DNA of 64,000 bases from Eutreptiella sp. 'Long Island Sound 2002' (lineage: Eukaryota > Protista > Euglenida): assembly GCA_964036045.1 (NCBI GenBank), contig OZ038378.1:94674001-94738000 (forward strand). The letters run 5' to 3'. Made by a program: the position numbers and the translations under genes. The first letter of the stretch is position 1. Each line of letters opens with the position of its first letter. This document shows positions 3,878-39,409 of the stretch, one piece after another. Below the pieces are notes generated by a model. The model searched no databases and had not been told where the DNA came from. It saw only the letters and a program-made list of their open reading frames with translations.

Positions 3878-5224
3878 CTGTAGGGAACTTTTGAATGGGG
3901 AGTCAAAATCGCGCGAATATTGGTCCCTAAACCTACCGTTTCGGCCAAAACAAACCCCTCCAATAGGGTTGGGAAAGCAGCAATATTTCTAAAAAAAATT
4001 TTTAGACAAAAAGAATACTGGTCCTTGCACCCGGAAACCCCCCTTTTTCAGCACCCTAGGGGTCCACGGTGCCCCACAAAATGCCCTATTCCTACCGCAG
4101 GTGTTCCCTGTGTCTGCGGTGCCATTGCGAACCATTTTGTTTGCATACCTTGCATTCGCACAGACATCTATTAGTCCATCCACCGCGCTTGCCTTCCTTG
4201 GCTTTCGTGAACGGCAGCGCGTCGTTCTCGAACGCCGTGGGTCCACGCGTCCTTCGCTAGCTCCAGGTGGCAGGGCCCCTGCCAGAGGACCATCTCGCCG
4301 GCGCGGACCGACACGGGGTGGAGACCTGCCGCGGAGCGGGTCAGGACGGTAGGATGGTGGCTGCCAACGGGGGGACCTGCTTGTGCCGGGGGTTCGGGGG
4401 GGTTGAAGACATCATCCTGGAGGTCCTCCACGACCAACCCCAACTGAGCCTCCAAGCCCCCCCCCCCAAAAAAAAGGAGCTGGCCATACGTGGGGACCTC
4501 CCGTTGCTCAACCGGCCCCAAATTTTCTTAGACGGCCCAAGTTGCCCACCCCCCCCCCCAAACGGACCCCCGACCAAAATGTCGCAGATGATGGTCATCA
4601 AAAACGCGTCCTACAGGGGTGAAATTTTAGCAACAAGCAGCGCACGTCTGTTTCCGCTCGTTTTTGACTACCCCCATATACGCTTTTGGCACTTTGCGCA
4701 CAACACCAACTTGAGGCCGGGCCCTGTGAAATATGGGAAAAACAGTCAAATTCTGAGGAGGAACCCCACGGAACGCATGTGTGTCTATGCACGGTTCAAT
4801 ATCACTACACTAGTGGAGGCACTACTCGTCGACGCATACCATTTTCATCAAAATTTGTTCTGCAGACAGTGAAATACTGAAGTTTGTCTGGAAACAGACA
4901 GATCTCACCAAAACATGCTGCACAGGTACAAAAATCGCAAATAGTTGTCTGGTTCCAGACACACGACACGTAACCTGGTGAAAAATTGCTGTATTCCACA
5001 AAAAGAACTATGGTCCGCAACCAAATGACATAAAAAAGTGACAAAGGACTGTCAGTCTTGTGTTCGGGAAGGGAAAAGTGCCAAAACAAGCCACTGGGAC
5101 CTAGAGAGCAGACTGGCACGCCAACAGGTTGGCACAGTGTTTATATGTTATGAATAGATATAGTGGTCACTGAGCAGGCTTACAACAACAGTGTGCAACC
5201 AACAGCAACTACAACAGAGCACGT

Positions 5225-8200
5225 TTAATTCTTTTTGGAGCCATTGAACCGGTCCTTCCATGCCTGAAACCCAATCTTGGCCTTCTTAGAAGCAGACGAC
5301 TGAGAATCGGTTCCCGCAGCTGCAGACTCGTCAGGAGGTGATGCCTGGGCTTTTTTGTTGCCTTTGCCTTTTGACTGTGATCCGGAGGCTCTGTTCTCGT
5401 CTCCTTTGCGTGTGCGACCACCTTTTTTGCCAGGGCCCCATGACTGCTTCGGTGTACCATACACGGCGTTCTCTGGGGTGGCGCCCACCTCTTCCATGTC
5501 CTCCTCAGACTCCTGCTCTCCCTCTGCCTTCTCAGGCACACAGCTGTAGTCCACAGGGCAACCCTCCGCAAAATTTTCAAACACTGCATTCCAGGGGATA
5601 GGGCTCAGCCCATCAGCGATGCGTAAATTGCTGCATACGAGGGCACCAACGTCTGCAATAGACTCCTGCTCCGTGGGCAAACCCAAAACCACACTGATGG
5701 GTACCGGCATGCGCACTGCCAGACTGCAGGCCAGCTTTACAGAACTACTCATCACCAGGAACCATAGGGTACTTGCTTCTGAGGGTACTGCATCCGCCAG
5801 GTGGTGCATGACAAACCCAACAACCTCCGCACACAGCTGGTTCACCATTGAACCACAAGAAAAGGCAAAGTAGCGAGGCACCTGTATAAGGGAATAGTGA
5901 GTCTGAGACCCCTACTCGTGCAGCTGGACTGGCCGATGTTGTCTGCTTCCAGACAGTTTCCCACAATTTACCCTTCTCGGGACGGATTCTGCCTCATACG
6001 TGTCTGGTTCTAGACAAACTTTAGGATTCAACGGTGCACCCAACGTGACTGTGGTAGCAGGCAGCAGCCAGCAACAGCAGACAGCGATACCTTCTTGGCG
6101 GCGGATCTTTGGAAACAATCCATAGCTCACTGAATCCCATCGAGTACTGCTGTGTGAGAGATCCCAGAATAAAGCAGGCCACGCAAATTGTTGTCAACCC
6201 CTCGTTGTCGTGCAACTTTCGGAGACCATCCAGCACTCCCAAGAAGTCACAAGTGGTGCCAACAATTAGAACAAGCGTCCCAGACACCAAGTTGCAGCTG
6301 ACAACGGAATGGATGCCTTCCATATGTCCGTTTGGGACTTCAACAATGATCAGGCAATACGGCATGCTGGCCACCGTAGAGTGCAGCGGCGTACCAGATG
6401 CCATCCCAGTGATATGCATGACCCCATCCAGGGACTTGCTGTCAGTCACCCCCGCCTCTGGGGCCTCAAACCCAATGTTCACGGTGATGAAGTTGGCATC
6501 AGCAGCGATCTTGACCTCAGGGTTCACCAGGGGACGTTTCAGGGCATCACGGAGGGGAGCATACGTGGGGTCACTCCAGATTGCAGCACTGACGACATAC
6601 GTCGAGGGGGGCCAGCAGTTCTTCTCGGACCACTTCCAATTGTACGTCTTGAAGGTGACATGGGTCTTCGACAGGAGACTCTGTTCACAACGGGCCCGTT
6701 CTGCAAGCGTTTTGCGACTGGGGTCAACCAGGTGGTTGTCCGGGTGGCAGAGATGATGTTCCCACAGACGTGCAGCCTTCAGTTGCTTTGCCTTTTTTGT
6801 AAACATTGGCAGTGACACATTGCTGGAGCCCATGTACTGTGTAACCTCCTCGAGGTCTGGTGGGATGAGGCCTTCGATACATTTCCAAAAGTGCAGCTTT
6901 ACTGGCAGTCCACGCTTTTCCAATCCATCGACAGCAGCCACAGCATTATCCCCCATTACTTGCACCCAGGCGGCAATCGGAAACCAGGCTTTTCTTACAG
7001 TGTCCTGCAGAGCAGACAGGGGTGTTGGCAGACACAACAGGAGGAATTCTGCTTTGACAGGCCGCATCAGTGAAATGTTGTCTGGTTCCAGACTTGGAGG
7101 TCCACGCACAGGCTTTGACAGTGATAAAAAAGTTGTGTCTGGCACCAGACACAAACAGGAGGAATTCTGCTGTGATAGGCCGCATCAGTGAAATGTTGTC
7201 TGGTTCCAGACATGGAGGTCGAGGTACAGGCTTTGACAAGGATAAAAAAAAGTTGTGTCTGGTTCTAGACAGACACAGGAGGAATTATGCTTTGACAGGC
7301 CGCATCAGTGAGTTGTTGTCTGGTTCCAGACATGGAGGTCCTGGCACAGGCTTTGACAAAGATAAAAATACATCAGGTGTCTGGTTCCAGACAACTGTGA
7401 CAGCCTTCGTTGTTGCATGGGACAACTGTCCTAGCCAGGGACGCATGTGCACATAGTTCCTCTACTGCCACCCTGTGCAACACGGGGCATACCAGTGTCC
7501 CCTTCTTCAGTGTATAGCCACCCCTCACGTACAGCACTCCCAGGTGTTCTCGTATGGATTTCTCCTCCAGTTCATTGCGGTCCAGCTCAACACGCAGGAG
7601 TTCCATCCGTGTAGACAGCTTCGGCAAGGTCGTGGCAGACTGCACAGCCTGTGATGCGACGGATGGTCACAACAGTTACCCCCCCCCCCCCGACAAAGCG
7701 GCCGGTCACGCACGAGAACGGGCAGGACGAGATGGACGTCACAGGCGCAGGATATTTCACTGGTGTGGGCATGCAGTGTCGGAGTGCACTGTCACAATCG
7801 ATATACCTGTGACATGCCAGCGATTGACTCCCGTATGTGCAGAGTGACATCCGTACGAACCGCTTGATCAAGAAATTGCACTGACCATGTTGGCGGTTCC
7901 AGATGGGCATTCATGTACCCCCGTGAGATTTGTCGACAGGCCTCGGCGATATGCTGCCCCGATGAGATCCAATACTGCCCCACTGTGTCACGCCACACTA
8001 TGATTCGGATTTTTGCTGCACCTGGTGGATTCCTGCGTAGTTTTGTCATCTTGTCCTGGACAAGATCTTCATCCGCCACTCTGATTTGGCCATACTCCCT
8101 TTTTTTGTCCCATTGCAGTCTACTGAGGGGCAGCAGGACCTCCTAGTCTTTAGTATGGTCACCAAGTTTCACTTGAGCACCTTTACGCTTTGCTGTGTCA

Positions 8201-8412
8201 CCACGTTTTGTGCTTGGAGGGGGCATCGTCCACGGCACTGAATTGGGATGCCAGATGAATTGAGGGGTCTGCAGAGGGTTCAATGCTACCTTGTGTAAGA
8301 TCAGACATGTTGGAACCAACTGGGCGCCAAAAGCAAAATGACACAAGGGCGGGCCTTTTAGCAATGTGATTCTAACTTTCCAGACCTCCCGACGTGAGCA
8401 TACTGTTTTCAC
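5225..8412 (-). pseudogene. Element A second gene: ParB/Srx-like domain + helical region + methyltransferase-like fold + acidic/basic tail (multi-exon, with stops)
   Basis: EVLLPLSRLQWDKKREYGQIRVADEDLVQDKMTKLRRNPP...IRIIVWRDTVGQYWISSGQHIAEA (7900-8142); LWEHHLCHPDN; PYCLIIVEVP...LVSGTLVLIVG (ORF 6021-7154); C-terminal ORF 5225-5881. Homologous segments occur in B, C and F. Confidence 0.8.
7019..7393. repeat. Intronic ~120-bp tandem repeat, each unit carrying two TGTCTGGTTCCAGACA palindromes
   Basis: Palindromes at 7079, 7136, 7197, 7256, 7317, 7378; alternate spacers are near-identical. Confidence 0.85.
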
Positions 8413-8460
8413 ACTCAGACCACATCATGTGCAATACACAGGGGTATAAAAAACACAGTC

Positions 8461-8837
8461 TGTCTGGTTCCAAGCACAACATTTTGCTTTTGAAGTGTGC
8501 AACCGGTGTGAAACAATTTAATGTCCGGTTCCAAACAACCATGTACTGTTCTGGCCATGGACAGGGCATAAACAGTCAGTGCCTGTTTGTAGACACATTG
8601 GCGGTCCAAATACGAGTTAGCTGGCTACGCAATGTGATTCTAGCCTTTCCCAAAACAGAGCAGATGACGTTGCAGGCAATGGAGGGTGCAACACACAGTC
8701 TGTCTAGTTCCAGACACAACAGCTTGACTTCAGCAGATGACATGGGTGAAAAATCATTAACTGTCTGGTACCAGACGGCTACGGTACTTCTGTGGGCACT
8801 AGAGGGGGTACAAACAGTTGGTGTCTGGTTCCAGACA
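8461..8837. promoter_or_regulatory. Array of seven 16-bp palindromes at ~60-bp period with non-repeated spacers, between the two genes of element A (putative operator/loading sites)
   Basis: TGTCTGGWWCCAGACA-like sites at 8461, 8522, 8580, (8642), 8701, 8762, 8822. Function is inferred. Confidence 0.6.
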
Positions 8838-9105
8838 CGCATGCATGCAGTGTTTATTGTGCTGGCTTCCTAAACCGGGTATTCGGTTGGTCAGGGTCAC
8901 ATGTTGTGGTTTTGCGGTGAAAGAGGGATGTAAAGCAATGCAACAGTGCACGTACGCGCGCATCTCATCAGTCCAGCACTGCGTTGGTTGACATTAGTGG
9001 CCCCTGCGGGAGTACCCCGATGCTGCTGTGGTAACCAACCCCAGCCCTGTGTGTGGTTCGATACAGACACCTTTGACGTGCCCTGGCCACTTCGGCGGGG
9101 TGTCA

Positions 9106-11242
9106 TCAGTCCATTGAGTCATCCTCCAGACTTACAACCTCGTACTCCTTCATTTCTTGCAGTAGGACAACAGGTGGTGGTTCATCATCCTGTGCGTCCA
9201 CGTCCACTATCAAATCCCCCACGGACCGGTGTGAACTCGAATCCGAGACAATTGCAGCTTCCGGGGCCTCATCGTCATCATCTGCTACCGCAAATGTTGC
9301 GGCCCGCACCCGCTGAGCCTGTGCATCTCGGCCTGCATGCTCGCGGGGGTCTCTGCCTGGAACAATGGTTCTCAACAACCGTGAGACCTCATCGGTGGGC
9401 GAACGCGCTGCACGTGTCAATGTGGAGAGTGATCTAGTCAACAGTCTGTAGTACAGGGCCACACCGCCGTTGTCCAGTTGTTACCCTGGGAATTTCAAGT
9501 CCTCAGGGACAGCGGTGAATGCTGCCTTCTTTCCACTGTTCCATTCAAGATGGACCATGCCGTTTGTTGTAATGGCCAACAGGAACCCGCGTAGCCGTGA
9601 CGACATGATCGCAACCAGTCCAGTGCGGATCTGCCCCCGCGTCTTCTTTTCCCCGCGCTTTGGTGGTGCCATGCTCAAAAAAAAGGTCCAATGTCTGGTC
9701 AAAAGTCTTCATCTGGGGGTATGCGCGGCACCTAGATCCTAGACGACTCAACATGGCCTCCAGGGGCTCCTAAGCATAACAAAAGCGGGGACGGCGTCAT
9801 TCCAGGGTAACCACAACAGAAAGGCAACACAAAGGGTGCGTACGTAGGGGACATTACAGGCACTGTCCATTGACAAGGCTACAATCAATACCAAACTCAA
9901 CTCCAATACTTTGCGGGCCTGTACGGCCTGTCCCTGCTGGTCGACCATCCCAGTTGCAGTCACGAACCAAGTTTCCAAGGAGGAACGCAGCCAGAATGTA
10001 GAAGTGCAGGAGATTCTTCAGTCCAGTCAACCATACGAGCGGTAGCTTGCGGGATGCCTCTGGAAACAGCATAATTGAAGTTTCCTTGTGTACAATGAGG
10101 TCGTCAACGTTGGGTGTGGCTCACAGTAGGGCATAAAATTGCTTCTCAATGTGCAACAGCTTCGGTTGGCACATGATCTCTTCATCTACCGCGGGCATTT
10201 GCTGCCCAAGGTAGCCCAATATGGGGAAGAACTTACGGTGGATCATGGTACACACATACTTATAAGGGTGCCAACAGCCATATAGCATTGGGAGAGTGGC
10301 ATAGTGCTCAGACAACTGACAGGGGTTGTATGTGCGACTGTAGATGAATTTGGCGAGTCTGTAGAATATATCTTCATCCATCACAAGGGGCATGACGTGG
10401 CATGTGTGAACCTAAATGGCTAGGCATTGTTCCATGATGTGGAGCAAGTCCTCATTGGAGCTGGAGACCAGGTTGGCTAGCGTCAGGGGGTACCATTGGA
10501 GAAAACCAATGCTGTCCCGGTGCACATCTAGTGGAACCCGTACGTATTGGGCCTCTGGTGGATCTCGCCTCAAAGCGTCCACCGCTCGTGGGGACTACCT
10601 GAAACTGGCTGCTATGGTCTGTGCTGTTCGCGGGATGCGTTGGAGAAGATCGTCAAGTGTAAGGAAACCCGGGTACATAGGAATCGCAGTTGTATGCAAC
10701 ACTGACATGGCAGTGACATTCCGACAGCATTCAGATCGTACCGGGTCACTGTAGTACCGTCGGCGATACCAATTGTCAAACTCCTCCACCAGCTGCTTCC
10801 CTGCCATTGATCTCCAGATGGCCTTTGTTCTGGCATGTGCCTGTTGCCCAAAAGGCGGTAACCGGCCCGCGGCAAGACCAGCATGTGACAATTGTCTCCG
10901 CATCCCCCTGGATGCACTTATCATTGAGCCAACAGCCTTTTCCTCTGGAAGAGCCATCTTCCGACACAGTTGCATCATCGTGTACGCCTGGCGTGCAAAC
11001 ACTCCATACCACCTTGGCCACGGTGTTTGCCCATGAGCTTTGATCAACCTTGCCATGCTGCGTCTTGTTCGCCGGTTGACCCTCATCTGTGCGCAGAACT
11101 CCACAAGCAGGGCTGCACCTGGTTCCTCATCGCATAAAGCGGCATCCATAAGCTCCAGCGGTGTACCATACTTCGCTCCACCTAAGAAGTCGCGGAGGAG
11201 ACCAAAGGGATCCGTCGCAGCACTGGTCACCTGGCTCATCAA
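9106..11242 (-). pseudogene. Element A DDE-like transposase (Academ/DUF6589-like motif order)
   Basis: EFDNWY..NVTAMSVL..RVPLDV..WYPLTL..VMDEDIFYRL..LYGCWHPYKY..LVRDCNWDG..YVRT..EAMLSRL across ORFs 10595-11242, 10121-10393, 9854-10072, 9545-9754, 9481-9702, 9106-9462. Several stops and frameshifts. Confidence 0.8.
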
Positions 11243-13119
11243 CAGTGGAATAGAATCAGACTAATTGAAACAGTGAACAACAACGAAACAGACGTGCTCA
11301 GTGACTAGAGAATTGGTGGAGAGTGTTTGAAACCACACCCTGCTCACTCAAATGAGGGTCTTAATCACGGAATTTCAGCAAAATGTGTGGAACTAGACAC
11401 ATTTTCCATGTTATGGGGGTGTACATAGGACGTATGACACTCGGGACAGACACCTGGTGACCCCCCCGCCTGAAAGGTTGAAAATTGTTTAGTTTGTCTG
11501 GAACCAGACACTGCGACCTCAAAAACTCGTTGTGACAGGGGTGGAATTTCAAGAGTGTCTAGTTCTAGACACTTTTCGAAATTCCAAGAGAAAGGTACAT
11601 AGTTGGAGAAAGATAACACAGCACAAAGCAAAACTTGTTCACTGAAGCTTAAAAATTGACCATGCGCAGTCACCTGGGTTTGTGTGCGTGGATATGAGAA
11701 CCCAAAAAACAGGCTGTCAGGCAGCCAAATTCGTATACGCGTCTGAATGACTAAAAAACATGCTATGAAATTTTCCACCGGCCAAAATGGCCTTTTTTGC
11801 GTGTTTTGGGCTCATTTACCGGGGTGGGCAACTTGGGCCGTCTAAGATTTTGCTGGAGCAGCGGGGCAGTGGGAGGATCGAGGAAGGTGGCATTGGGCAC
11901 CACAGTGGCACGCCTCTTGTTGGGGGTCCACTGGGTGAAGGTCCCTTGCATGTCTTGGCCGGGGGGGGGGGACCATGGTGGCGAGTGGTGCTCACCATGA
12001 TGAGGACCTCCCCTTGATTGAGGAGAACCTCGTCACGTCTTTCCACCTGGGACTCCCCCAAGGCCGTTCCCACCTCAATGTTCAGGTGGTATTGTGGGGA
12101 AAGAGCCACAAAAGTCGACAAGTGGCAGTCCCGCCCCAAGTTTTCTCCACTCGTTCCCAGGCCCCCTTGCAGTCAGCGGGACCCAGGGCGTCTCCGTTCA
12201 CTGTATATCCAAGCACATTGGCAAAATTGATGGGCATGGGGGGTGCGGGACGGTCGGGGAGGAGAGAGGGGTTAGGGTTTGCATACGCGTAGGGGTCCAG
12301 CAAGGGGGCGGTTCGCAAAGGAGGGGGAGGGGTTGGCCGGTCCCCGATACCAACTAGACCCACGCATTTGATGAAGCGTGGGAAGAGTGATGCCAGGGAT
12401 GTGGTGGAGTGGGCGCATCTTAGGGTGGAAGGGGAAGATCCCCAAGTAATCCCGCCACTGAGCAGTGCCGGTCTGCCACTGAAAGGGGAAAGAAGAATGG
12501 TCCTCCTATTCAAGGCGATCATATGCGCTGTGGGCAACGGGCGAGGTTAGTGGTCAGATTGACGGTGCAAAACCCGATTTCAACTTGCCCGCCCCATGAG
12601 AAGATATAACCCCCAAGAGAGAGTCAATCTTTTTGGGGGCGGGTATAAGGCAGACGGCCCTCAACTCGAGGAGGGCTAGCAGCAGCTGTTGCCACAGCTC
12701 TATGGCCCACCTCTTGTTGCAAAGCGCACCGGCACGCTCGGGCTCCCTCATGTCAATATGGATGAGGTTGGGGGAGGGGTCCCAACCCTTTGCCCACTCC
12801 ACGACCTCCCCCACAGGCAGGCCCGCTATGTAGGTGGCCTCCTTCAGCGTGTGTGGACGGCGTGGGAGGACTTGATAGTGCGCGTGGGTGTTTGCGGGTC
12901 GCTCGGGAAGGCTACCATTTTGCGAGAGGGCCATTGCGAGATAAATCACAACTGCACAAGGGGGGAAAGGTGCAAAGCTCGAAAAAGGTATCGCACATGT
13001 GCGCGATCTTCGCGCGATTTTCGCGCCAATGAGAATTGTAGGCAAATGCGAATGAGACATGAGTACGACAATGCGAATCTTCGGGTGAAATTAACAATTT
13101 TCTCAGAATCTAAGCTGCG

Positions 13120-15260
13120 TTAACAACCACTTGAACTACATTTTGCGCATTTATAAATTTCTTCGGTTTTTGGCGAAGTAAGCAAGGCAAATAGGCACAA
13201 AGACACGGAATCAGGGGCAAAACCCGCCAAAAGTCGGCAACGAGAGCATGTCCATTCAAAAGTGCGGTGCACAAAGGGTACATGGACGTGGCCACCAGCG
13301 CCTAGAGCGTAGAGAGCAACGACATTGTCCGCTACCTCAACTTCGAACATCTAGAACCCAATTGATGACCTCCAACAGCGGGTCCATCTGCTCCGGGTTG
13401 TACGCCACGTACCGCGGAGACTGAGAAATGCAAGAAGGTAGAATCAATGCATCACCACCTGCAGTATGCTTCGTTTCCAAATAAGTCCCGCGGAATACAC
13501 ACATACCTTCTTCGTGCACTTCTAGGACGACTTTTTGAGTCACGTTATAGCGCGTGGGCAAAAACCGGTCTTCTAGAGTGTGGCGGTGTCATGATAGGGA
13601 TCAACATCAAGGTCGTCACCCACCACCTGCAAATAGCTGCTCACATCTCCAGAATCCCTAGCAACGAGGACCAAGTACTCCTCTTTGGCCATTGCTCTCT
13701 TGATCAGTGGATGCACGCCTGCACACTAACCCTTTGGCAAACTTACGGCCAAGAAGGAGAACTCAATGGAGATGATCTCAGGTGCGACGGGCTTACCAGG
13801 CACGCCATGGATCACGTGGACGACTTTCCCGGCAGCATCAGTTTCATGTGGGAGCGTAACTCGATGGCGATCAAAACTATCACTACTGTCAATTTGAGGA
13901 GCAGAAGATGAAAATTAGAAACTAGTTTTATCGAACCATGCTGCATGTGCTGGCAATACTGACAAGGAGTACTTTCAATATCCTATGCCGTACTGTCGGG
14001 ACCCTGACAAACAATCCCATGTAGCCTACTGTCAGAATCCTAACAAATGACCGCATGTGGAGGGCTGCGGACCATATCGTTGCAGGGATGAAAGCTTTAG
14101 CCGAAAGTTGCCGGAGAGGCTCATAGCCGTTGTTGGACCACGACCCTACCTTCATTATACCTCCAATCGGAGGATGCAGACGTTGTACGGACCACCGCCA
14201 TTGGGGTGTGAGGCGAACAGCAAGATCTAACCTAGGAAGCTAATTGAGAATGCGCTGCCACTATACACGGGTCCCTAAACAGGCAGGCATTTGATAGAGA
14301 ATTGCACCAACAAATCCAACGAACAGGTGCAAGAGGTTGCAACACTTCTCGAATAATGCGCGTGCTCGTTGCTTGGATTCACTAGATGCTAGTCGTACAA
14401 ATGATTGGCCTTCATTACCTGACACGGCTTGTGCATTGCTGCAGAGTGAAACTGGTACCGTTGATAAGGGCCACAACCTTGTGCACTTCAAGCAGACCCA
14501 GCACTGCCAGAAGTCCACCTGAAAAGAATAAGGGCAGTTATCGTGTCACGATCTTGACAACACGTTGTGTATTTGTGTTAGGATTATATACTGGATATAG
14601 GATTATGGTAGTGGCACGGTATTTGTCTCACAACATGATTGTATCCCACACACTATTGTTAGGATCCCAACAGTGGCAAGGTATTTGTTTTAGAATAAGA
14701 TTGCATGATGGACGCAGTACTGCAAAGATCCTGACAGTAGCATGGTGCTATATCAAACAACTATATGCCAATTGACATCGAACACACCGTGTAAGAAGGT
14801 CACAATTATAGCTCAACTCACCCGCAGGCGGCGGATCCTCCTGCACGTTGATCCTGATCTCCGCCACGCGGTCCGGATCCACATATCGTGTTTGGCCCAG
14901 GGTTACGCCATCCTGTGACCTTAGTGCCGTCTGGGGTACCACCTCCTTGCGTTAAATCAAGCGGTCAAGCGTGGCCTCATCAGGGTCCCAGGGCGCGGAT
15001 GTGTCGCCGTACATCATTCCACCGTTCTTGCCGCACTGCTGCTTCGTGGCCTTAGGTCCCGATTGCTTTGTGTCATCGCCTTGATCGATGTTCGTGTAGC
15101 TGAACTTCATGTGGCTAGTCATTTGTGCACCCTCTCCTCATCCTCAGATGCTCTTGGGAACCTTCCTGCTGTGCCCTGTTCTTACGCCTCTTGTGTCGCC
15201 CACCCTCTCCACCCCCTGAGGATTGGGATGAGGGGGATGGCGAAGACATGAATGGCTCGT
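13120..15260 (-). pseudogene. Element F ParB-like gene, 5' and middle exons
   Basis: TLGQTRYVDPDRVAEIRINVQEDPPPA|gtgagt (14824-14942); LYD*HLVNPSN (compare LWEHHLCHPDN of A); IISIEFS...EEYLVLVARDSGDV (compare LIIVEVP...GTLVLIVGTTCDF). The GQH exon was not found. Confidence 0.65.
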
Positions 15261-15469
15261 GACAAGACCTATTCTTTCTGAGCGACCAACACCAAACCAT
15301 GCAGAAGGCCCTCTATAGGCTTTCAAGGCAGAAAAAAGTTGGGAATTTACAAAATCTTCTTAAAAGGCAGTTTTTTGTAACTGTCCCCTTTTTCACCACT
15401 ACCAAGTGTTGCAGCTTCAAATGTCATTTTCGGAAAGTACAACATACCACCACCAAATAATAAAACAAA

Positions 15470-16000
15470 TTATGGACACCAGGGACCAAGGCCATCAATT
15501 AGGCCATATCTGTAATATGCATGACTTGGTCCATTACATTCAGCTATGATGTTTGCCAGGTCATCTGCGTTTTGACCTGCTGTCAAGATCCCGATAGTTC
15601 TTGAAGGAACTGTACATGAACCGTCCACCTCATCTCCAGCCCAAGTGTGACGTGCATACGACGATGCACACATTAAAACATACAACACGATTCTTTCGGC
15701 TTTTTGTGCAGTTGGTTGTCCACGTTTTAGGATCCTAACGAAGCGAATGAGCGATGCGGTTGTGTAGGCTATTATGTGGGGTTGGTTTGCTAGTGTGCAG
15801 TATGAGGCTCCCAATGTTGCTCTTAGAGGCACAGCTTCGTGTGCAAATCTTCTCGATTACGCACGGTAGAACGACCACTGGGCCAATACGTGGATGGGCA
15901 TAGATGTCAAGTGCAAAGCGGCGAGCAGGGCGCTAGGGTGCCATCACAGGGGTTCCAAGTTATATGCTTAATCACACTCCACCACCCATGCGCACGTGCA
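15470..16000 (-). pseudogene. Element F transposase 3' fragment
   Basis: YARHTWAG resembles LVRxCNWxG and HGWWSVIKH resembles YGxWHxYK of A/B/C; same orientation, upstream of the ParB-like gene. Confidence 0.4.
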
Positions 16001-16684: not shown

Positions 16685-17110
16685 CCCTTGGTACACGCTA
16701 GAAGACCCAATCTCGTTCTAGCCTAGAACCCGCTGCAATGGGTGAAACGAAAAAAACTAGTGCTTGCCCCGACCCATGGGCATAGGGGGGCGGGGGTATG
16801 AAGGGTGCAAATTGGACCCCTATTACCATACTAGGGGGTCCATACCTTGTTTTTCAGAAAAAAAACCATTTTTCACATGAAATCCAACAAGTACAAAAAC
16901 CCATTCTAGCGACGTTCTAGCGCCCTTCTAGCGCCGCGCCGCTAGAACGGCGCTAGTACGTCGCTAGAAAGCTTCGCTACAACAAGGCTCGAAGAAAAAC
17001 ATACACGCACATTTGGCAAGTAAAAGATACCAATGTGGGAAAGGGGGGGGGGTTCCATGACACATAGACACATAGAAACCATCACATTTGGTACATGTCT
17101 AGTCATATGT

Positions 17111-17150
<40 letters not shown>

Positions 17151-26000: not shown

Positions 26001-26034
<34 letters not shown>

Positions 26035-29000: not shown

Positions 29001-30599
29001 GTTTAACTTTTGTGAAGATGTGCTTGGAGCTACGTGTAGGACGGAGCACGCATCGGTCAATTCAAGAACTTGAACACGACATCAATAGTAGTAGTTGGTG
29101 GCCTGTTGATGTTGCAAAGCATTTGTTCAACATATGGACGGCCATGCACACTCGGGCTGCTGTGAAGAGTCGCCACCCGGTGGAGCATGTCCTGCAGGGT
29201 TACCGCCAGAAAGGGTGCATCTTGCCGCACGGAGGCTTGCAGCAATGCACGGTGAAACCGTTGCAAGAAAGGGCATGTGAAACTGCTGCTTTTGTGTGGA
29301 CCAAATGTGATCATCACGCTTCGTTTGTTGGGATGCACTCAAAGCAGAGGAACGTACCAGGCCCATTGGGATGCGGACATTGATTGTACTACTTTTGTTG
29401 TGTTACCGTTAATGGAATTGTTTCATTTTGATGGTCATCACAATCCGGCGCAGCTGGTTGACAGGGTGTATTTGTGCATTCGGCATCTGCAGCAAGCAAA
29501 CAATGACCTGACGACCGTACTACAGAATATTATCAATGGCACTGTGAACAAGAAGGATCTTCGAGTGTCTAGATGTGCGCAGACCGCAAGCAGAACCACC
29601 AAAGTGGAAATCCTTGTTGTTGACTTCACATCGCACATCTTTCAACGAGGAACTCGTTGCTATTGTGAGACTGTTGTGTGAGATACACGCCCACACAGGA
29701 CGTGCTTTACCTCTTTCTTGTGAATATGAAGGTGCACCTGTAGGTACTCATATTTCCGTACACTGTCAGGTCTGAAAAGTACAACATGCACCAAGTGAGG
29801 TTTTCTTTACCCATGCATTACGGCATTTGGCGCCCCTACAAGTACGTAGCAATTCTCATGTGGAGACAATTATATCCCATGTTCAATTGCCTTCTCAAAA
29901 TTTACCTAAAAGTAGGAGATGAGGTACTGTGTTACCGCTAGCTGGTTTATTTAGAGGAACTATTTGATGCAATCTTTTAGCCAGTCAATCAACGAAGGCA
30001 ACTGTGGACACCGCTGTGTGTTGTTTATGTTCTATTTAAGCCCCCACCACAAGTGACAGAGAGGTGATCGGCAAGATAAAAGTGTTGCAAACTCTGTCGT
30101 ACACGTATAGTCCTATTGTGTTCCACCTAGGGTACAATATGTGCTCTTGTACGTGAGATGGAAAGCAACAACACACGGGGAGTCAATCCAAAGGTGTTTT
30201 ACAACATTGTTTTACAACATTGTGTTATAGTAATGCGTGCGATGTATGGTACAGACTGCCTATGTACCTGCGCCCCACTTGGAAATGTGAAGTGGGCTAA
30301 GTGGTGTTTTTCAAGGGGTTTCATCTGAAAACGTGTGGCTTTCGGGGGTGGGTTGGGGTTTTGGAATGTCCCCAAAGGGATACCAATCCCTAGTCCAAGA
30401 CAATTTGACCGGGGTTTTTTTTTTCAACGGCTCAGTTGATTGAGCACCCCGACTACGCCGTCACTGAGCCGTCACTGAGCCGACTCACTTAGCTCTCACT
30501 TAGCTCTCGCTTAGCCCTCACTCAGGGCGCCAAATGGCTCACTGCGCGCTCACTGGGCGCTCACTGAGAGCTAATTGAGGGCTCACTGACGGCTTACTG

Positions 30600-32376
30600 A
30601 ACATGCACGGGCACAAATCTTCCATCATACGCACGTACTTGGCCCTTTGTCGCAATGCACGTTCCACAATCCTGCTCACCATGTTATCTCTCCCCTTCCT
30701 CTCCCGCCGGGCACGTGACCAAGTCATGCACCGGCGTTGGAACCCCCTTCGCTTGGTCAAAGCCCTACTCTCCACCTCCCAACCTTCCTTGCGGAGGTTA
30801 TCATCTAGTGTGTGGTTATCCACCACACACGGCAAGCCCGACTTGTTGTTCAGCAAGTTGACCCCCCACTATTCCTAAGCAGCCGCTTCAGTCGCACATG
30901 GTTGCGCTCGAATGCAAAGCAACTAAACTTTGCAATGGTCCCCCACCGTGCAACATACGCATACATGCAGTCAATCCACATGTGCGTCCACGAGGTCTTT
31001 TCCCATCCCAGTTCAAGGTGTCTTGCCCCCATGGTCACTTGGCGTTGCAGCAAGGCAGGTTGTTCTGCACCACTCAGAAAGTCGTCCTTCCAGGCCACCT
31101 CGGCCATGGCAGCAAACGCCTCCCACTATTCCGTGCACACATCAACCCATGGCTTGCCCCCCGCTTGATGGTTCCCGATTACCCGTGCAACCAGCGGCAA
31201 CGGTGGGCCCCACAACCGGGCCTTGACAAAGTGCGCAGCAGCTCCCTGCTCAATGCGCACTTGTCCTTTGGCACTTGCCATGTTCGCCCCCCACTTTCCA
31301 GGCCGCACCGTGCGGGCCACTTTCCGTGCCCCGTTTAGAACCCCCTGCACCATGGTAGCGGCACTCTTCCTAGATACTCCTCCATGGGTCAGGTGCACCC
31401 GCACAATTCCAAGGACTCCCGCAATGGCAACACGCATGACTCCATGCGCACCGAAGTGAGGAACACGGCGGTCCGCCGGGATGTCACGAAACACCCCGGT
31501 CCGACGTACATGGCCCTTTATTCCTTCCACGGCAACCTCTTGTCCCCCGAAGTTGCGCAAAACCGCTTCACGGTTTGCGCCGCAGCCGTGGCACACCATG
31601 GCCCCGGGGCTCTTCTTGGTGAAGCCGTCCCCGCCGGCCAGCACGATACGGGCCTTGCCATCGGCCCGGACGAAGAATAGGGGGCTGCGCGCCAGCCCAT
31701 CCGCATGTGTCAGTTGAAGGGCCGTAGCAGTGCGGAGCAGAGTATCGAAGTCACACTCCGATTGCATGTTGTACACCGTGGCCCACAGCTCGCTACACGC
31801 GAACAACCACCAACTGGCAAGCTGAGTGGGCCCAAAACCCGGAGGCCACGGCACACTGCACGTAGACCCGATTCCACTGGTTGGTGCCTCGCCGATGGTC
31901 ACCCAAGTGTTGCGCTGCGCGCCCGGTCGCAAAGGTTCCAGTGTGCGTACGGCTCGCGCTTCATACAGCAGGGCTAGGCGCTCGGCAAAATTGCAGTGTG
32001 CCCCTTGCATTTCGTACTGCGCCTCAAGGATACAAACCCGCTGGCTAGCGGGTTGGCTGAGGTGCTTCAGCCACGGGGCCACGTCGGCTCAGCTAACGGT
32101 GCTGTCCGATTCGGGCAGCAGGTAGGCCATGTCGCGGCGCGACACCTGGGAACTATGCATCCGCCACAGCACGGGCAAGGCCTCTGACTTGTTGTCAGGG
32201 TTGGTGTCTGTGGGCCGGCTGTAGTCCTCAGGGATTAGCAGAAAGCTACCATCGGGTTGGAGCTGAGCCCGATATTGCACACATAGGAAGGCCGCCACCA
32301 CGGCCACCAAATCCTCAAGCCGGGTTGCGCGCTGGCGCTGCGTCCCCAAAAGGAAAAAGGGACGTTTAGGTGGCAT
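30600..32376 (-). pseudogene. Element D transposase (CMC/EnSpm/Plavaka-like)
   Basis: FFVRADG..IVLAGGDG..VCHGCG..RRVPHFGAHGVMR..WTHMWIDCMYAYVARWGTIAKFSCFAFERNHVRLKRLL; the H...G....FER motif is typical of CMC-group catalytic Glu regions. One stop at 32089 and frameshifts. Confidence 0.75.
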
Positions 32377-32720: not shown

Positions 32721-33789
32721 CATCACCCCCAGTCCCATTGTCCCCTCCCCCCCCCCTGCGGCTGATCCTGTAATATGCGCTGCAGCCCCCACCTCGCCAC
32801 AGCCATGGCACTGACCCTGTTTTCCGTCACTAGTGGGAATTGGCCTATCCCCCCTCACCCCCTGCCCACAACCACCAGTTTGTGGCGGCCAACGGTCAGA
32901 CTTAGGCGGCTCAAGTTGCATGGTCAAAAACGAAGGAGAAGGTAGGAAAATGACAGGTTTCCAAAGGCATCAAAAAATAGTTGTTTTGATGGATATTTGT
33001 AAACCGTCGCAAACAAGTATGGCGGAATAAATATTTCTATAAGAATGACGTGTCCCATGGGCGAGACAGGGAAAAGTATTGTTTGGTGACCATTCTTTGC
33101 GCGAGGCCTCGCGCAAAGACGTTCATTTGTGTCACATTAATGTGCTACAGCACGACGCATTAGGCAAGTTGTCGAAAAATGGAACCCTGTCGTATTTATA
33201 CACGTAACTTAGTACCATTATCAGGATTGCGTGATAGAGATGGATCTATTAACGAATAAACTGCAACAATGGTGTACCCAAGAATCTTGAAAAGTATAAA
33301 TGTTCCGGAACAAACTGCAGTTTCAAGCGCGAGGCCTCGCGCATGGAACGGCGCATGAGAAACATTAAAGTTTCGGTGATCATTGCGCGAGGCCTCGCGC
33401 AATGGATCTCATAAGCGCTCATAGAAACCAAAAATGGAACAGATCCACCAACTACACAGCATGTGCATTCCCTTGATGCGGCGCTGCTGCATGGGCGCCC
33501 ATACAGGTCCCGCCGGCATCTCCAGTTTTCATACTGTGGTCACCGCTGGCTTCGCTGCCCAACAGCGATGGTAGCGCGCCGCAACTGGCTACCGCAATCA
33601 GGATTAACTAGTCAAATGTGGGATCACCAGACAGTTACAGTTAACGGAAAATGGTGCATGCGACAAGCGAATCACAGAATAATTGGTCGCGCGAAAACTG
33701 TGTGACAGGTTGATGTTTCAAATCAAGAAAGTTTTTCAAACAGCGATCTTTACGTGGATACACATACGCAATTATTCTTCACAGCAACA

Positions 33790-35775
33790 ATGCCCCTGCG
33801 AAAAGAGGTGGACCTTGAGAAGACAGTGGCCGCAGCATCTGGAGTTTTCCGCGATGTCTGCTCAGAGGAACCGCCGTACCACACGGCTGAAGAACTGTGG
33901 GAAGGGCTAAAACAGGGGGACGAGGGCGCGCGATTGTTGTTTGTGTTTTTTCTGCGTCTGCGCAAAAATGAACGGACGCATTGCAGCGTTGAAAAGGCGA
34001 TTGCGGCAGAAGGCAAGAGATGGGTTGGTGTTTTGATAGAGGAGGCCTGGCGCCTTGATTTCCTGATGCGCCACCGCGCAGTTCCATACGAGGGAAAACC
34101 AAAGTCAGTTGTTGCGGTAGAGGGAAGTAGGGCGCAGCGTCGCATTTTAGCAAGGTCAGGTCTGGCGCGATAAAGCGCACCTTCGCTGAAGGAGAAGGCC
34201 GCAGTCAGGTTACAGACTACATGGAACAAAATACACCAACAGTGGGTTGTGTTGTGGATGGACAACTGGTAGAACAAACAGTTTACCACAAATCCTGACA
34301 AGAACGACAAAAGCCTGAACGCAACAGCGTTGGCTGTGTTGCTACTGAAAGATGCACCGCGCTACTGGCATGGTCATCCTAGCCTGGAAGAGCTTGAACG
34401 GCGTGTTCCTGTTGTTGCACGCATGCTAGGGAACACCGAGGGAACATTTGCACGTATCCTGCGTGATCTAGGATTTGCAAGCACGCGTCCTGTTGTTCGA
34501 AACATTAGGGCGCCGCTTGACATTATTCCCCCTGTACCTGCCAAGAAACCACATTGGCGACCCCTTTGTCTAAGTAAAGAAAACGTTAGCGGCAACGTCT
34601 CGCTGCTTAATCTATTGCAATTCACTAGGGACTTGGCGCAGCACACTCGACCAGTCGTGCCTGTTTTATGTGATGAGAACATCCATTACCGCATTTGTAA
34701 GATGATGTACGGTGAAAAAACAACGGGTTGGAATGTCCGGCTTTTCTTGCGGTCACACCCTATATTGTATGGTTTCTGCCACGCGTACAAGTTTTGCGTT
34801 ACACAAACATTTCGCTCATTTTGGCCGATCGTGACTTTCTTCCGTAAAGGTTTGTTGCGCAGCGGTGACAAAGTCCCCTGTTTTCCCAAGCTGATCACAA
34901 TGGAGATAACCGTTGGCGCACTGCTGTTGGGTATGGGCCCCCACATACGGCGCCTTAACAGAAAATGTCATTCCCTTGGGCTGGCACGTCCTGTAAATCG
35001 GCGAGGACGCCTCCGTTACGCTGTGTGTAAGGCCATAGAGGTTCTGTTAACACAATACTGTCCTATGTTACTATACCTAGGTCACCTCGTTAGACAGTGC
35101 AATTGGGCCGGGGAGACGGCCAACACGGGTGTTTTTGCTTCTGAGGGATTGCAAATTGTTATGTGTCTGTTAGACCGTTTGAACATGGGGGACACACTTT
35201 TAAAATACGAACGCACTGTTGCAACTGCGCTATTGTGCCACACTGCATGACACACAGCCATGGCTGGACAGGCTTTTGCCGAGGAGTTTTGTGAAAGTCT
35301 GCTTTCCAGCCTTGTGACAAAGAAGGGCCAAAACAGAGGTGCAGTAACCATTGAAGATGTTGACGATCTGTATCATCTCATCACTATCCGCAAAGAAGGT
35401 CACGGGGTGAACGTCTGCAAAATCCCCAATTCCTTTGTCAATTCCGTGCGTCAGCGGTTAACTGCTTACTTGAACGCAGAGCGTGTATATGTGCCTTGGG
35501 TTAGGTGGTGTGCTGAGCCTACTTGTACCATTCAGGCGCATTGGCCGCGCAGGGGTGTACCTAACTTTCCACCGTCTCTTCTAATTCCAAAGGGTTCTAA
35601 CCACTACAAACAGGTCCTTGTGTCTGTGTTGTTGGTGCTAACGCAGCAGGGGCCGCTTAAGGGTGGTTTTAAGCGAAAACTGTGGGAGCTGATCCCCCAG
35701 CGCAGTGTGTTGGAGGAACAGAGAGAGGCCGACACACTGCCAAACGTTCGAAGAAGATTGGAGAACATGCAGTGA
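33790..35775 (+). pseudogene. Element C DDE-like transposase (single frame, three internal stops)
   Basis: MPLRKEVD..VLWMDNW*..SLNATALAVL..RAPLDI..WRPLCL..LCDENIHYRI..LYGFCHAYKF..LVRQCNWAG..KYERT..FAEEFCESLLSSL; stops at 34171, 34270, 35248. Confidence 0.88.
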
Positions 35776-36010
35776 TGCGCTAGGCCTCGCGCAAACAGCA
35801 TGAAACAACAGGTTAGTACACCCCCTCTCTTGCGCGAGGCCTCGCGCAAGGTTGACAGTCAAAAGCAGTGCCCAGCCCCTTCAGTTTTGCATTCTCAACC
35901 ATACTGTACTCGTATTCGCTAAAATTGCCTCACATATGCATTATCGACGACGATTTTGACCCTTTTCAATGTTATGTTTCCTTCAATACAGGCTTTCTCC
36001 TTATCGCAGA

Positions 36011-38797
36011 ATGGCAAGCCCCGCCAAAAAAAACAACCGAGGAACGAGAAGATACCGACTATGACCCTGGGACCTCAGGATCGGAGGCTGGAACACCAAA
36101 GAAGGGGCGTAAGAAGAAGGAAAAACCAGATCCTGGCTTAACCTTGGGTACTAACATCGAGGACCACCTGAAACCGGATGGGAGGCAGGTGGAGGTTGAG
36201 CTGGACAACGTGAGAATCGACCAGGAGAAGACAAAGGGGCAGATTAGACGGAAAGATATGAAGTTACTGCAGAAGCGTATTGAGTGACTCGAAGCAGCAC
36301 CGCCAACAGGCCCATTACACGTCGTTCTCTGGGAAGATAATAGTATGTTGCCAACCGACTGTTCGCTCTTCTCGTTGCGCGAGCCCTCGCGCATGGACGT
36401 GTCTCATATTTGCAGATGGCGATTATTGGTGTGTATCTGGACAGCACAGTGTGGAAGCGATTGCGAAGATTCGGGAGAAGCGACGCACAGAGTGTCTGGA
36501 TCTGCAGCACTGGCATACTACATGCATCGCCGATATTCTGAAGCCTACGACACCGTGGGCCTTTCGTGCAAAGCTGGCGGGACAAGCACAAGGAAGCGCA
36601 CAAGACGTTGAGCCAATACCCCTGTATGAGGCAGCAGAAAACCTCATTCGATGTGTTGAAGATCAGCGGCAGCGAGGCCTGGCTGACACGTATAGCCATC
36701 TCAAGATCGCCATTGTGGATGCTGTGCAGATGAGTGCCCTGGTTCCAACCGCTGAACTGAAGCAGCCTGGTCAATTCGTATGTTCATTAATCGTTGTTTC
36801 GATGCTGTTCCTTGCGCGAGGCCTCGCGCATAACGTTGTCACTTTCAGGACAAAACGTATAAATTGTGGAAAGATTTTATGACGTTTGCCTACTATGCTG
36901 GTCCGGAAGCTGTGAAAGGTCTGCAGAAGTTCCACGACAAAGAGGAGAAAGTCACGAAGAACGCGCTGAAGAAACTGGACGGGATCCTGCTGCCGGAGTT
37001 CTACAAGAAAGTGGCAGAAGTGATGCAGGAAGAAAAAACAACCCTTAAATCCTTGCCGAATTCGATTGACGACATCATCCTTGACCAGTGGGTCTCAATG
37101 CATCTGGACCACCCGCACAACGGCCAGTACGTTCGACCTGAGAAAGGTGTGTACCATCGACGCGACGTGGGTTCCGCTTCTGCATTGGTGCGCCGCACTT
37201 TCTCCATTTCTGTTCTTTAGCCAAAGACATGCGGACCCGCAAAGAGGTTGCTGCACTTGGAAGGCCTGCCCTGAAGGTGACTCTTGGTACATGGGGCTAT
37301 TGGCGGGAACCTGAAGGCAAAAGTCGCGGTCCATGGCCGGCATGGAAATCCATGATTCGCGCACCACTGTGGCAGGTGGCAGAGAAAGGCAAACCCGCCT
37401 CCTTGAAAATCCTCAACGTCCAAAAACTCCTGGGTCAAGAGCCTACCAAGAGCCGTGTGGTCCCCCCAGCTGCTGGCGTTACTGGTGACTTCAAGACAGT
37501 GGAACAGCAGGATCCATTACTGTCAAGTCAAACTATCACAATTGAGGCGACCCGAATTGCAGCGTTGGCCCACGATCCCCTGAGGCGGTTTATTGAGATT
37601 GACAAGAACCTGATTGTCATCAACGGCGACATATTTGAACAACTTGCTCCTGAGATGATGTGCCCAGCCTGGCTGTATGAAGAGATGGCGCGTGCCGATA
37701 CCCTTATCTGCGGCTCTCAAACTGCTGTTGACAACATGTTCGACGTGCTGGAGACGGAAGCAGATAGGCGTCTCAACGATGATTTCAACGCGCCGCGCAT
37801 GGCTAACATGTTGCGTGTTCCCATCTTCAGTTGGCCAGTCAAACCGAAGCCTGCAGGGGATCCTACAACGTTTGACGTTCGCTGGTTGCTGATTTCGTCA
37901 CCGGAGAGCTGGCCGAGAAAGGTATAATTCCCTCATTACGTCCGCTCTTTGCGCGAGGCCTCGCGCAATAACTTCTCCCTCATTGCAACTTCCGAATTAT
38001 CTGACGTTTGGACCTACTCAAGTGAGGAGATGGATCCTGTTGAATTTGGCGGTCACCTTCCGATGACGACGGTTATGTGGTATTTCGACACTCACCTCTT
38101 TTACCTGAAGCAGGATAAGAGCTTCAAGCCTGCGTTTGTGTTCATTGACCATCAGCCGGATCTGGTGTGCAAGATCGCGTCCATCGAGCCGGATTCTCGC
38201 ATGTACCTTCTTGGTGTTACCTCCGACAATCTCTCCGATCGGGTCAACAGAGTGCAGACTCAATTGAACCACGTATTGACACAAGGGTCGAAACTGGACG
38301 TGTCTGGTGATTGGGAGCAGCAGGCCAACTGGTCAAACCGTGGTATTCCCCTTTGGGTTCGCGATGACAATGTGGGTTCTGATGCGTTGTCGCTGAAGGA
38401 GGAAGAGACTGTTGAGAAAGGTCAAGCTGCAGAAGCACTGGCCCCTGCAAAGCGGAAGTCTACTGGTGGGGAACCAGCCCCCAAGAAGAAGAGGACTGCC
38501 TCCAAGCCTCAGGCAGCGAAGTCGGTTACCGGTGCAGAATCCGACGAGAGCGATGGGGATGAAGAGGGGGAGAGCGAGGAAGAAGAGGAGGAGAAAGCGC
38601 AGGTCTCCCAGGGCAAGGCGGCGAAGAAAGTGGCAGCGAAGCCGAGGTCCGAGAAAACCGGGGCCCGAGCTCCATTCAAGCAGCGAGCCCGTCATTCCCA
38701 ACCAAGAAGCGAGCCCGCAAAGCCACCGCCTAAGGGTAAGACGTCCGTTGCTAAGGCATTGGGTTCTAAGATGCAAACTGTTCCGAAGAAAAAGTAA
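36011..38797 (+). pseudogene. Element C ParB-like / methyltransferase-like gene (5 exons)
   Basis: QVEVELDNVRIDQEKTKGQIRRKD..LHVVLWEDN|DGDYWCVSGQHSVEA..RAKLAGQAQ; WVSMHLDHPHN; IVINGDIFEQL..SDVWTY..LPMTTVMWYF..AFVFID..RMYLLGV. GT-AG introns at 36343-36415, 36778-36848, 37167-37220; a fourth starts at 37922 with a degenerate acceptor. Confidence 0.85.
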
Positions 38798-39409
38798 TTT
38801 CTTCGCTTGTTCTGATATATTATGCGCGAGGGCTCGCGCTATGCATTCCTCTTCGACGACCTTTATGCTATCACCTTGTGCGGCACATTTTTCTCTGTGA
38901 TGCATTTTATTGCGCTGTTGTGTTGGTGTTTGCGCGAGGCCTCGCGCAAAGAAGGGGTGCCAAAAAATGCTTCTTGTCGTGCAGCGTGCAACATGGTTTT
39001 CGAAAATTGGTTTTCCAAAAGATTGAAAGCTCATGGGTGTTTTTATTGCAAAGCATAAGTGGTATAGGAAACAAAAAGTTGTGGTTTTCCCAAAAAAGAA
39101 CTTCATTTTGGTGGAAATAAATCATTTTCCCGGGCAGTCGGTTTTGTTGAAAAAAAAGGAAAATGGACCAGTTAATTGCTTTTCACAGGATTTTAGGTTC
39201 TTGTGTTTTAGGTCCCCCCCAAAAGGACTATTTTTTCGCAGTGCCGTGGAGAGGCAGTTTTGGGGCGCATTTTGACCATGCAACTTGAGCCGCCTAAGTC
39301 AGAGGGCCCAGCCATCCACCGAGCTGAGGGCTCACTGAGCCGTTTCGCGCGCTCACTGTGAGCGCGCCAAACGGCTCAGTGAGCTCTCAATTGGCTCTTA
39401 GTCACTTTA

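Follow-up and report, generated by a model that had tools for sequence, protein, structure and literature searches.

A probable family of two-gene DNA transposons in Eutreptiella that pairs a DDE-type transposase with a predicted ParB/sulfiredoxin-fold protein

What are three stretches of DNA that share their ends and their gene content but are not recognisably similar in nucleotide sequence in between? The question is raised by a window of 64,000 nucleotides from the euglenid Eutreptiella sp. 'Long Island Sound 2002' (positions 94,674,001 to 94,738,000 of contig OZ038378.1, assembly GCA_964036045.1), which contains three such elements, designated E1, E2 and E3. As documented below, they are probably old inactivated copies that represent three deeply diverged lineages of one class II, cut-and-paste transposon family, in which a gene for a DDE-type transposase (gene 1) is accompanied by a second gene (gene 2) that encodes a protein with a predicted ParB/sulfiredoxin (Srx) fold at its N-terminus. 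Coordinates without a contig name are positions in this window.

The window was scanned for all CTTAG...CTAAG pairs that are 1-15 kb apart and flanked by an identical 5 bp. There are 33 CTTAG and 29 CTAAG sites in the window and a flank match is expected by chance in 1/1024 of cases, and the scan returned just three pairs, 4527-11846, 19560-25928 and 32901-39298. These are precisely the elements, with the sizes, ends and 5-bp target site duplications (TSDs), that an earlier note on this DNA had reported. E1, with its genes on the minus strand, is 7320 bp long and flanked by the TSD ATTTT at 4522-4526 and 11847-11851; its terminal inverted repeats (TIRs), located at 4527-4552 on the gene-2 side (CTTAGACGGCCCAAGTTGCCCACCCC) and at 11821-11846 on the gene-1 side, match at 26 of 26 positions. 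E2 (plus strand, 6369 bp, TSD AGATG) has TIRs at 19560-19585 and 25903-25928 that differ by four mismatches (~22/26), and E3 (plus strand, 6398 bp, TSD TCAGA) has TIRs at 32901-32929 and 39270-39298 that are identical over 29/29 bp. As the inverted repeats extend beyond the pentamers and are paired with identical 5-bp flanks, chance is excluded for all three elements. The TIRs of E1 and E3 have a common core, CTTAGRCGGCYCAAGTTGC, with 16 of the first 19 bp the same.

Beyond their ends, E1, E2 and E3 have no DNA similarity detectable by blastn (word size 9) at E<1e-3, whereas translated comparisons reveal that gene 1 is homologous across the three, with 28-33% identity and E values of 1e-27 to 1e-38, and that gene 2 is also similar, more weakly than gene 1. 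Both genes are present in each element, co-oriented and in the same order, and the description of three elements that have the same two genes without DNA likeness thus stood up to both types of comparison. The elements had also been called complete. This is correct for their structure, as both ends and the TSDs are present, but not for their genes, as gene 1 is broken by stop codons in each element and gene 2 of E1 and E3 by a stop and a frameshift; E1, E2 and E3 are structurally complete yet dead.

Copies of all three elements are present elsewhere. A piece of E2 gene 1 matches more than 120 protein clusters with ~80-90% identity, encoded on megabase contigs, and all of the contigs sampled from these matches belong to ENA assembly ERZ25074135. 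The 5-bp TSD proved to be consistent, with this length found in all 8 of the complete copies examined, the three in the window and five others (same assembly). The E2 family is represented among these five by a 6363 bp copy with the TSD TATTT (L001) and by a second copy with the TSD AAGGA (L010). The E1 family contributes a 7208 bp copy that is 93-94% identical to E1 over its full length (L004; TSD TTTAT) and a 10303 bp copy that has two internal insertions (L008; TSD TTGGA), and the E3 family an 8084 bp copy with an internal duplication (L009; TSD TCCCT). Two further features of such copies were observed. At L006:9429-20209, bp 1-1925 of an E2-family element, the region from the left end to mid-transposase, is present in six or more units arranged head to tail, an unusual rearrangement product. 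Retroelement genes that encode reverse transcriptase and RNase H adjoin E3-family copies at L005:1-2787 and L009:13590-16949.

The family is not limited to these close copies. A HMMER search of 1.84 billion representatives identified gene 1 relatives in 549 clusters (50% identity level, E<1e-3) that are spread across metagenomes and metatranscriptomes, with sources in ENA, JGI and Logan contigs, and many of these are intact and encode proteins of 700-840 aa. The two-gene pairing recurs in two distant lineages with both the gene order and the position of a gene-2 intron retained. One (L002) is on a 6.6-kb metagenome scaffold and has an inverted repeat, CTATGGCGGCCCAAACCGACC, that is like the ends of E1 and E3; the other (L003), from a sediment metagenome, has the transposase followed by gene 2 in the same order. 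A third contig (P0159) has a transposase and then co-oriented open reading frames (ORFs). The transposases of these three contigs are merely ~25-38% identical to each other. On these sequence comparisons, the pairing of the transposase with the ParB-fold gene appears to be ancestral, and the ParB-fold gene, present in every lineage examined, is seemingly a constant and the only partner.

Gene 1 has no introns and occupies a single frame in each element. It extends in E1 from 9547 to 11242 on the minus strand, with at least six in-frame stops and tblastn matches to intact relatives at E values of 1e-38 to 1e-50. In E2 it is located at 20131-21666 on the plus strand, with an in-frame TAG at 21058-21060 as the sole stop in the core, and in E3 at 33754-35775, also on the plus strand, with stops at 34171, 34270 and 35248. 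A variant genetic code was considered for these stops and ruled out. All three stop codons, TAA, TAG and TGA, occur and intact relatives, with proteins of ~700-800 aa, exist, and the three gene 1 copies are therefore pseudogenes. The motifs W-x-D-N, N-x-T-A, P-L-D, D, Y-G-x-W-H-x-Y-K and E-E-x-x-E follow each other in this order, and every motif in the earlier list is present. There is no Pfam match to gene 1 in the long ORFs of E1-E3, in ten intact relatives or in the 59 members of the transposase alignment (A1); DUF6589 and the hAT, P, MULE, CACTA and Plavaka families were unmatched by all 59, and the transposase profile had no relevant match among PDB sequences.

An intact relative of 747 aa (P0164) was taken to represent the transposase and modelled by AlphaFold2 from alignment A1, with a mean predicted local distance difference test score (pLDDT) of 84.9 and a predicted template modelling score (pTM) of 0.81. 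The model has an RNase H-like fold that accommodates a large, all-helical insertion domain of ~150 residues. Its best PDB match by Foldseek is the Drosophila P-element transposase (6p5a; probability 0.99, E 0.03, target-normalised TM-score 0.46), followed by the Hermes hAT transposase (probability 0.3-0.5), and its best match in the viral library is a Pandoravirus hAT protein. In P0164 numbering, D149, on the first strand, is conserved in 53 of 53 sequences, D283, just past the fourth strand, in 58 of 58, and E480, E481 and E484, where the helix past the insertion begins, in 46-48 of 50; D233 (in the P-L-D motif), H319 (in the W-H motif) and E360 are also near-invariant. The model and the conserved acidic residues support gene 1 as encoding a DDE-type, RNase H-fold transposase, and the designation 'DDE-like' is upheld at the level of the predicted fold. 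Such a protein would bind the TIRs, excise the element and integrate it with a 5-bp stagger.

To which superfamily might this transposase belong? The elements could be members of a named superfamily for which there is no Pfam model (Academ, Sola, Kolobok, Novosib or Dada), with only the cargo and the TSD length being unusual, a placement that we consider possible, if somewhat doubtful. In a 2017 survey, the RNase H domains of these five groups had no detectable Pfam similarity (PMC5751038), and the empty Pfam result does not, therefore, exclude them. Academ, to which the earlier note had drawn gene 1 by way of DUF6589-type enzymes, likewise pairs a transposase with a second DNA-handling activity in a eukaryotic DDE transposon, but its TSDs measure 3-4 bp in AcademX and 9-10 bp in AcademH (PMC10045372), as opposed to the 5 bp present in 8/8 copies here. 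The second activity in Academ is an XPG nuclease that is fused to the transposase (AcademX) or a RecQ-like helicase gene (AcademH), and Pfam detected neither an XPG nor a helicase domain in either gene of the elements or in the 59 relatives. With DUF6589 also unmatched, the suggested affinity is not sustained, a judgement that is based on TSD length, cargo and Pfam models. The TSDs of Kolobok, Novosib, Dada and Sola also differ from 5 bp, and we know of no superfamily with CTTAG termini; both points count against placement in a named superfamily.

Three other comparisons bear on the placement. P-element (THAP9-type) and hAT (Hermes) transposases resemble the gene 1 protein in having an RNase H-like DDE core with a large helical insertion. 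Their sequences are, however, only ~10% identical to gene 1, they lack the second obligatory gene of the present family, and Pfam detected no THAP, GTP-binding, hAT dimerisation (PF05699) or P-element transposase domain in the 59 members. P and hAT elements also generate TSDs that are usually 7-8 bp (usually 8 bp for hAT), rather than 5 bp. Transib elements do have a 5-bp TSD, but their termini are CACAGTG-like rather than CTTAG and they have a RAG1-like core, whereas no RAG1 or Transib structure is present among the top 50 fold matches of P0164.

Gene 2, in contrast to gene 1, is interrupted by introns. In E1, it is a multi-exon gene at 5228-8308 on the minus strand that has a frameshift and a stop near its 5′-end; the ParB/Srx-fold domain (7795-8142, with G-Q-I-R ... 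S-G-Q-H-I) is encoded there in one exon without an intron. E2 gene 2 is located at 22678-25140 on the plus strand with the domain in two exons, 22834-22992 and 23089-23409, that are separated by a 96-nt in-frame intron. E3 gene 2 (36011-38797, plus strand) has at least five exons, short GT-AG introns and a lysine-rich tail, with the domain encoded by 36147-36344 and 36415-36777 and an in-frame stop at 36285; as in E1, the gene has both a stop and a frameshift. The domain is split by an intron at the same place, just before G-Q-H, in E2, E3 and the two distant metagenomic lineages. A JGI contig of 1034 nt (L007, sample 3300017323) is 99-100% identical to the L003 sequence but lacks a 175-nt and an 80-nt GT-AG intron, and their precise absence from this contig establishes that gene 2 is transcribed and spliced.

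The gene 2 proteins are homologous along their length, with 26% identity over 208 aa between the E1 and E2 families (E 1e-18 to 1e-21). They are ~800-900 aa long, and the ~600 residues past the ParB-like domain, which include a conserved W...H-P-(D/E/H)-N motif downstream of the domain and end in a lysine-rich C-terminal tail, match nothing known. Gene 2 pieces had no match in Pfam, and profiles of the middle and C-terminal regions found nothing relevant among PDB sequences.

The motifs G-Q-x-R ... G-Q-H that the earlier note had used to propose a ParB/Srx domain at the gene 2 N-terminus are all present, and the proposal is supported by two independent lines of evidence, a profile match to sulfiredoxins and a fold search, that agree with each other. 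In searches of PDB sequences, a five-lineage profile of the domain had only sulfiredoxins as its top matches (human Srx, E 0.05), and a broader alignment matched Arabidopsis Srx at E 0.0044; in these matches, G-Q-x-R and S-G-Q-H of gene 2 are aligned with R-T-R and S-G-C-H-R of sulfiredoxin. Residues 55-169 encoded by an E1-family copy (P0284) were modelled by AlphaFold2 with a pLDDT of 84.7, and all 50 of the top Foldseek matches of this model are ParB/Srx-fold structures, the best with an E value of 1.2e-4 and a probability of 1.0. They include ParB from Myxococcus, Caulobacter and Bacillus, Noc, PadC, sulfiredoxin, KorB, SbnI and pNOB8 ParB, with 7BNR as the best PDB match. The gene 2 N-terminal domain thus has a predicted ParB/Srx fold that is supported by both approaches. 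This fold is characterised by the order strand-helix-strand-strand-helix-strand-helix, with a glycine-containing loop for nucleotide binding ahead of helix 2.

The predicted protein is, nevertheless, neither a canonical ParB nor a sulfiredoxin. The positions occupied by G-E-R-R and E-N-x-Q-R in ParB have G-Q-H-(I/S/V) and A-G-x-x-Q, respectively, in all five lineages, and the arginine patch of a canonical ParB is absent. The catalytic cysteine of sulfiredoxin (G-C-H-R) is replaced by glutamine in all lineages, and peroxiredoxin repair activity would not be expected. The analogy that had been drawn to DGQHR/DndB proteins finds no support, as NCBIfam returned no DGQHR or DndB match at E values up to 10, but only a weak, sub-threshold match to an unrelated regulator; the arginine of that motif is absent and the nearest relatives in sequence are the sulfiredoxins.

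What might such a protein do in a transposon? A possible answer comes from short palindromes, as each lineage has 7-19 copies of a 16-bp palindrome of its own, at positions that are retained among the copies of each family. In E1, about 19 copies of TGTCTGGWWCCAGACA (~1 expected) are distributed from 4885 to 11571, all in non-coding DNA, in clusters at 4885-4961, 5940-6016, 7079-7393 (six copies with a 57-61 bp spacing), 8461-8837 and 11384-11571, and they occupy the same positions in the 93-94% identical copy L004. E2 has 9 copies of GGGCGAAATTTCGCCC between 19768 and 25491 (0.2 expected), at 19768, 19838, 19907, 20019, 22355, 22425, 23864, 25407 and 25476. E3 has 10 copies of GCGCGAGGCCTCGCGC between 33099 and 38947 (0 expected; none elsewhere in the window), which start at 33099, 33327, 33385, 35777, 35832, 36377, 36814, 37951, 38824 and 38932. 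The distant lineages L002 and L003 also have palindrome families of their own, GCGCGCCWWGGCGCGC and TCGMTCCATGGAGCGA, respectively.

The layout of the palindromes is alike in all lineages, with ~3 sites located 200-500 bp inside the 5′-end, an intergenic cluster, sites in the gene-2 introns and a 3′ pair. In E1-E3, the palindromes are confined to non-coding parts, spliced introns included, and are never in exons. All 10 of the E3 palindromes are located within the ~29% of the element that is estimated from the exon map to be non-coding, one of them beginning one base past the final base of the gene-1 stop codon, and in L003 two palindromes lie inside an intron that L007 reveals to be spliced out. 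At L002:1881-1935, two palindromes of that family are located within the transposase reading frame, where they are translated as R-A-Q-A-R-N in a loop of the insertion domain that is hypervariable; these are either tolerated or part of an unspliced, in-frame intron. An origin of the palindromes as abutted transposon ends was considered and rejected, as their sequences are unrelated to the TIRs.

A fourth family of 16-bp palindromes, TGTCAGGATCCTGACA, has 9 copies with two mismatches or fewer (0.01 expected) in the window at 2747-3562, 13994-16077 and 19218-19233, outside E1-E3 and on both sides of E1. There is no transposase or ParB homology nearby, and E1 may have inserted into a non-autonomous relative that this family marks.

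The TIR core is near-identical in E1 and E3 whereas their palindromes are unrelated, and this parallels a well-conserved gene 1 and a fast-evolving gene 2. From this correspondence we infer that the transposase reads the TIRs and the ParB-fold protein the palindromes. By analogy with the binding of parS by ParB, the palindromes could be parS-like sites that are bound by the gene-2 protein as a dimer, a proposal whose chances fall a little short of even. Bound to the palindromes, the gene-2 protein would mark the DNA of its own element or help to organise it, and this might be used in pairing of the ends, in protection from silencing or to recruit an activity of the C-terminal region. Taken as a whole, this would describe an unnamed DDE superfamily in which a ParB/Srx-fold protein and co-evolving, parS-like palindromes are core parts rather than occasional cargo, a reading that we put forward tentatively and that is unlikely to hold in full.

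A different role for the palindromes must be weighed against this proposal. They might bind the transposase or a host factor, comparable to the subterminal repeats of Ac/Ds, En/Spm and P elements and to internal enhancers, with the ParB/Srx protein functioning as a helper that is not sequence-specific, for example an NTP-dependent or nuclease-type protein that participates in excision or repair, comparable to the XPG nuclease carried by Academ. Several palindromes are positioned 200-500 bp from each end, the usual location of transposase-binding repeats, the ParB/Srx fold includes enzymes as well as DNA binders (its matches here extend to sulfiredoxin and SbnI) and no DNA-binding domain was found in gene 2 by Pfam or PDB profiles. 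Approximately half of the palindromes, however, lie away from the ends, between the two genes or within gene-2 introns, and with TIRs that are conserved where the palindromes are unrelated, a conserved site is already available to the transposase. In the published analogue, it is a ParB-domain protein that is accompanied by repeat arrays (bioRxiv 10.1101/2025.02.11.637652). This alternative is in our view unlikely, though not far-fetched.

Several points weigh against the account of E1-E3 as transposons whose predicted ParB/Srx-fold protein binds the palindromes. Every copy in the window is dead, and activity is read from the copy number, the TSDs and the relatives. The putative catalytic triad of the transposase is assigned from the model and conservation, without superposition. 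Of the five AlphaFold2 models of the ParB-like domain, just one is confident (pLDDT of 84.7 versus 48-66), and its alignment is shallow. The CTP-binding arginines are absent from the domain, and a clamp cycle like that of ParB cannot be assumed; Pfam and PDB profile searches of the downstream region identified no helix-turn-helix after the domain. Finally, binding by the transposase would explain the palindromes equally well, and their recognition by the gene-2 protein is a prediction.

The earlier note had suggested that a ParB-carrying transposon lineage could be undescribed. This is not so for the principle, as ParB-domain accessory genes are already known in eukaryotic DNA transposons, but the transposase lineage and the compact two-gene design described here may be undescribed, and the former possibly constitutes an unnamed superfamily. 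PAG3 of red-algal Plavaka (EnSpm/CACTA) elements has a ParB-like N-domain, with 7BNR as its best hit, and a putative 2-oxoglutarate (2OG) oxygenase, and is adjoined by tandem arrays of inverted repeats; its authors propose that it binds to its own transposon (bioRxiv 10.1101/2025.02.11.637652). Sola1-1_Ec32 of Ectocarpus carries a ParB-methyltransferase gene (PMC12477816). An N-terminal ParB-like domain and inverted-repeat arrays within the element are features in common with the present family. The Plavaka and Sola1 elements belong, however, to other superfamilies and are giants of 17-21 kb. Their ParB gene, fused to an oxygenase or methyltransferase, is one among several accessory genes that can move, whereas the elements described here are 6.4-7.3 kb long with a 5-bp TSD and have the ParB-fold gene as sole partner, with no enzyme domain detected in it. 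The inverted repeats also differ in arrangement, forming one adjacent array there but being dispersed here through introns and both ends.

Gene 2 could, alternatively, be a diverged homologue of PAG3 (ParB plus 2OG oxygenase) or of the ParB-methyltransferase, and would then modify DNA or chromatin at the palindromes to escape silencing. The predicted N-domain fold and the best PDB entry, 7BNR, are the same as for PAG3, both have inverted-repeat arrays (bioRxiv 10.1101/2025.02.11.637652) and the H-P-(D/E/H)-N motif of gene 2 could be a metal-binding H-x-D. This last assignment is speculative, and Pfam and profiles of PDB sequences detected no oxygenase, TET/JBP or methyltransferase in the C-terminal pieces, which makes such an origin distinctly unlikely. 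That E1-E3 are a product of chance or of assembly is vanishingly improbable, given exact inverted repeats of 26-29 bp with exact 5-bp TSDs, independent copies on other contigs and homologues in unrelated metagenomes and one metatranscriptome, and no support for it was found.

Outside transposons, the closest parallel to the proposed recognition of the palindromes by the gene-2 protein is bacterial ParB-parS, together with Noc-NBS and KorB-OB, in which the same N-domain fold is associated with multi-copy, system-specific 16-bp palindromes. The gene-2 protein differs from bacterial ParB in having G-Q-H in place of G-E-R-R, in having no identified helix-turn-helix and no ParA partner, and in its eukaryotic, nuclear and intron-containing context. 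Sulfiredoxin is a eukaryotic member of the same fold and the nearest by sequence profile, but has a cysteine where gene 2 encodes glutamine, and the gene 2 protein is ~8 times longer. If the proposal is correct, the elements would be a small eukaryotic equivalent of the ParB-parS module of bacteria, with a transposon that recognises its own DNA. With one transposase, one predicted ParB-fold protein and ~10 short palindromes, the design is far simpler than that of the 17-21 kb algal elements, and the current hypothesis that the DNA of some eukaryotic transposons is recognised and marked by a protein of their own becomes directly testable, as there is one protein, one 16-bp site and natural swaps of specificity between lineages. 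If the lineage is indeed unnamed, it would be a widespread addition to the catalogue of eukaryotic DNA transposons that is invisible to Pfam-based annotation.

A scan with longer spacing found no fourth complete element in the window. There is one heavily decayed transposase relic of the same superfamily, at 28919-29974 on the plus strand (tblastn E 1e-4 to 5e-8), for which no ends were found; neither this relic nor the lineage-specific palindromes had been listed in the earlier note. Transposable elements are very abundant in the host genome, and Pfam matches are almost absent among host ORFs; there is no Pfam match among 20 flanking ORFs and no Rfam match in the window, and a search for the spliced leader of dinoflagellates was negative.

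Other repeats are present around the elements. Inverted repeats of ~130 bp, built of 11-bp units (GCTCACTGAGN / CTCACTTAG), are located at 30465-30600 and 44380-44500 and bracket 14 kb of DNA that holds E3 and, at 40-44 kb, a block with a GC content of 60-62% and long ORFs on either strand; E3 probably lies inside a further TIR element. A ~2-kb repeat family that consists mostly of degenerate 10-bp units is present at 16685-18830, 25984-28800 and 50000-52150, the first two copies being inverted relative to each other and flanking E2. Tandem repeats with periods of ~100 and 200 bp occupy 62753-63554, near the end of the window.

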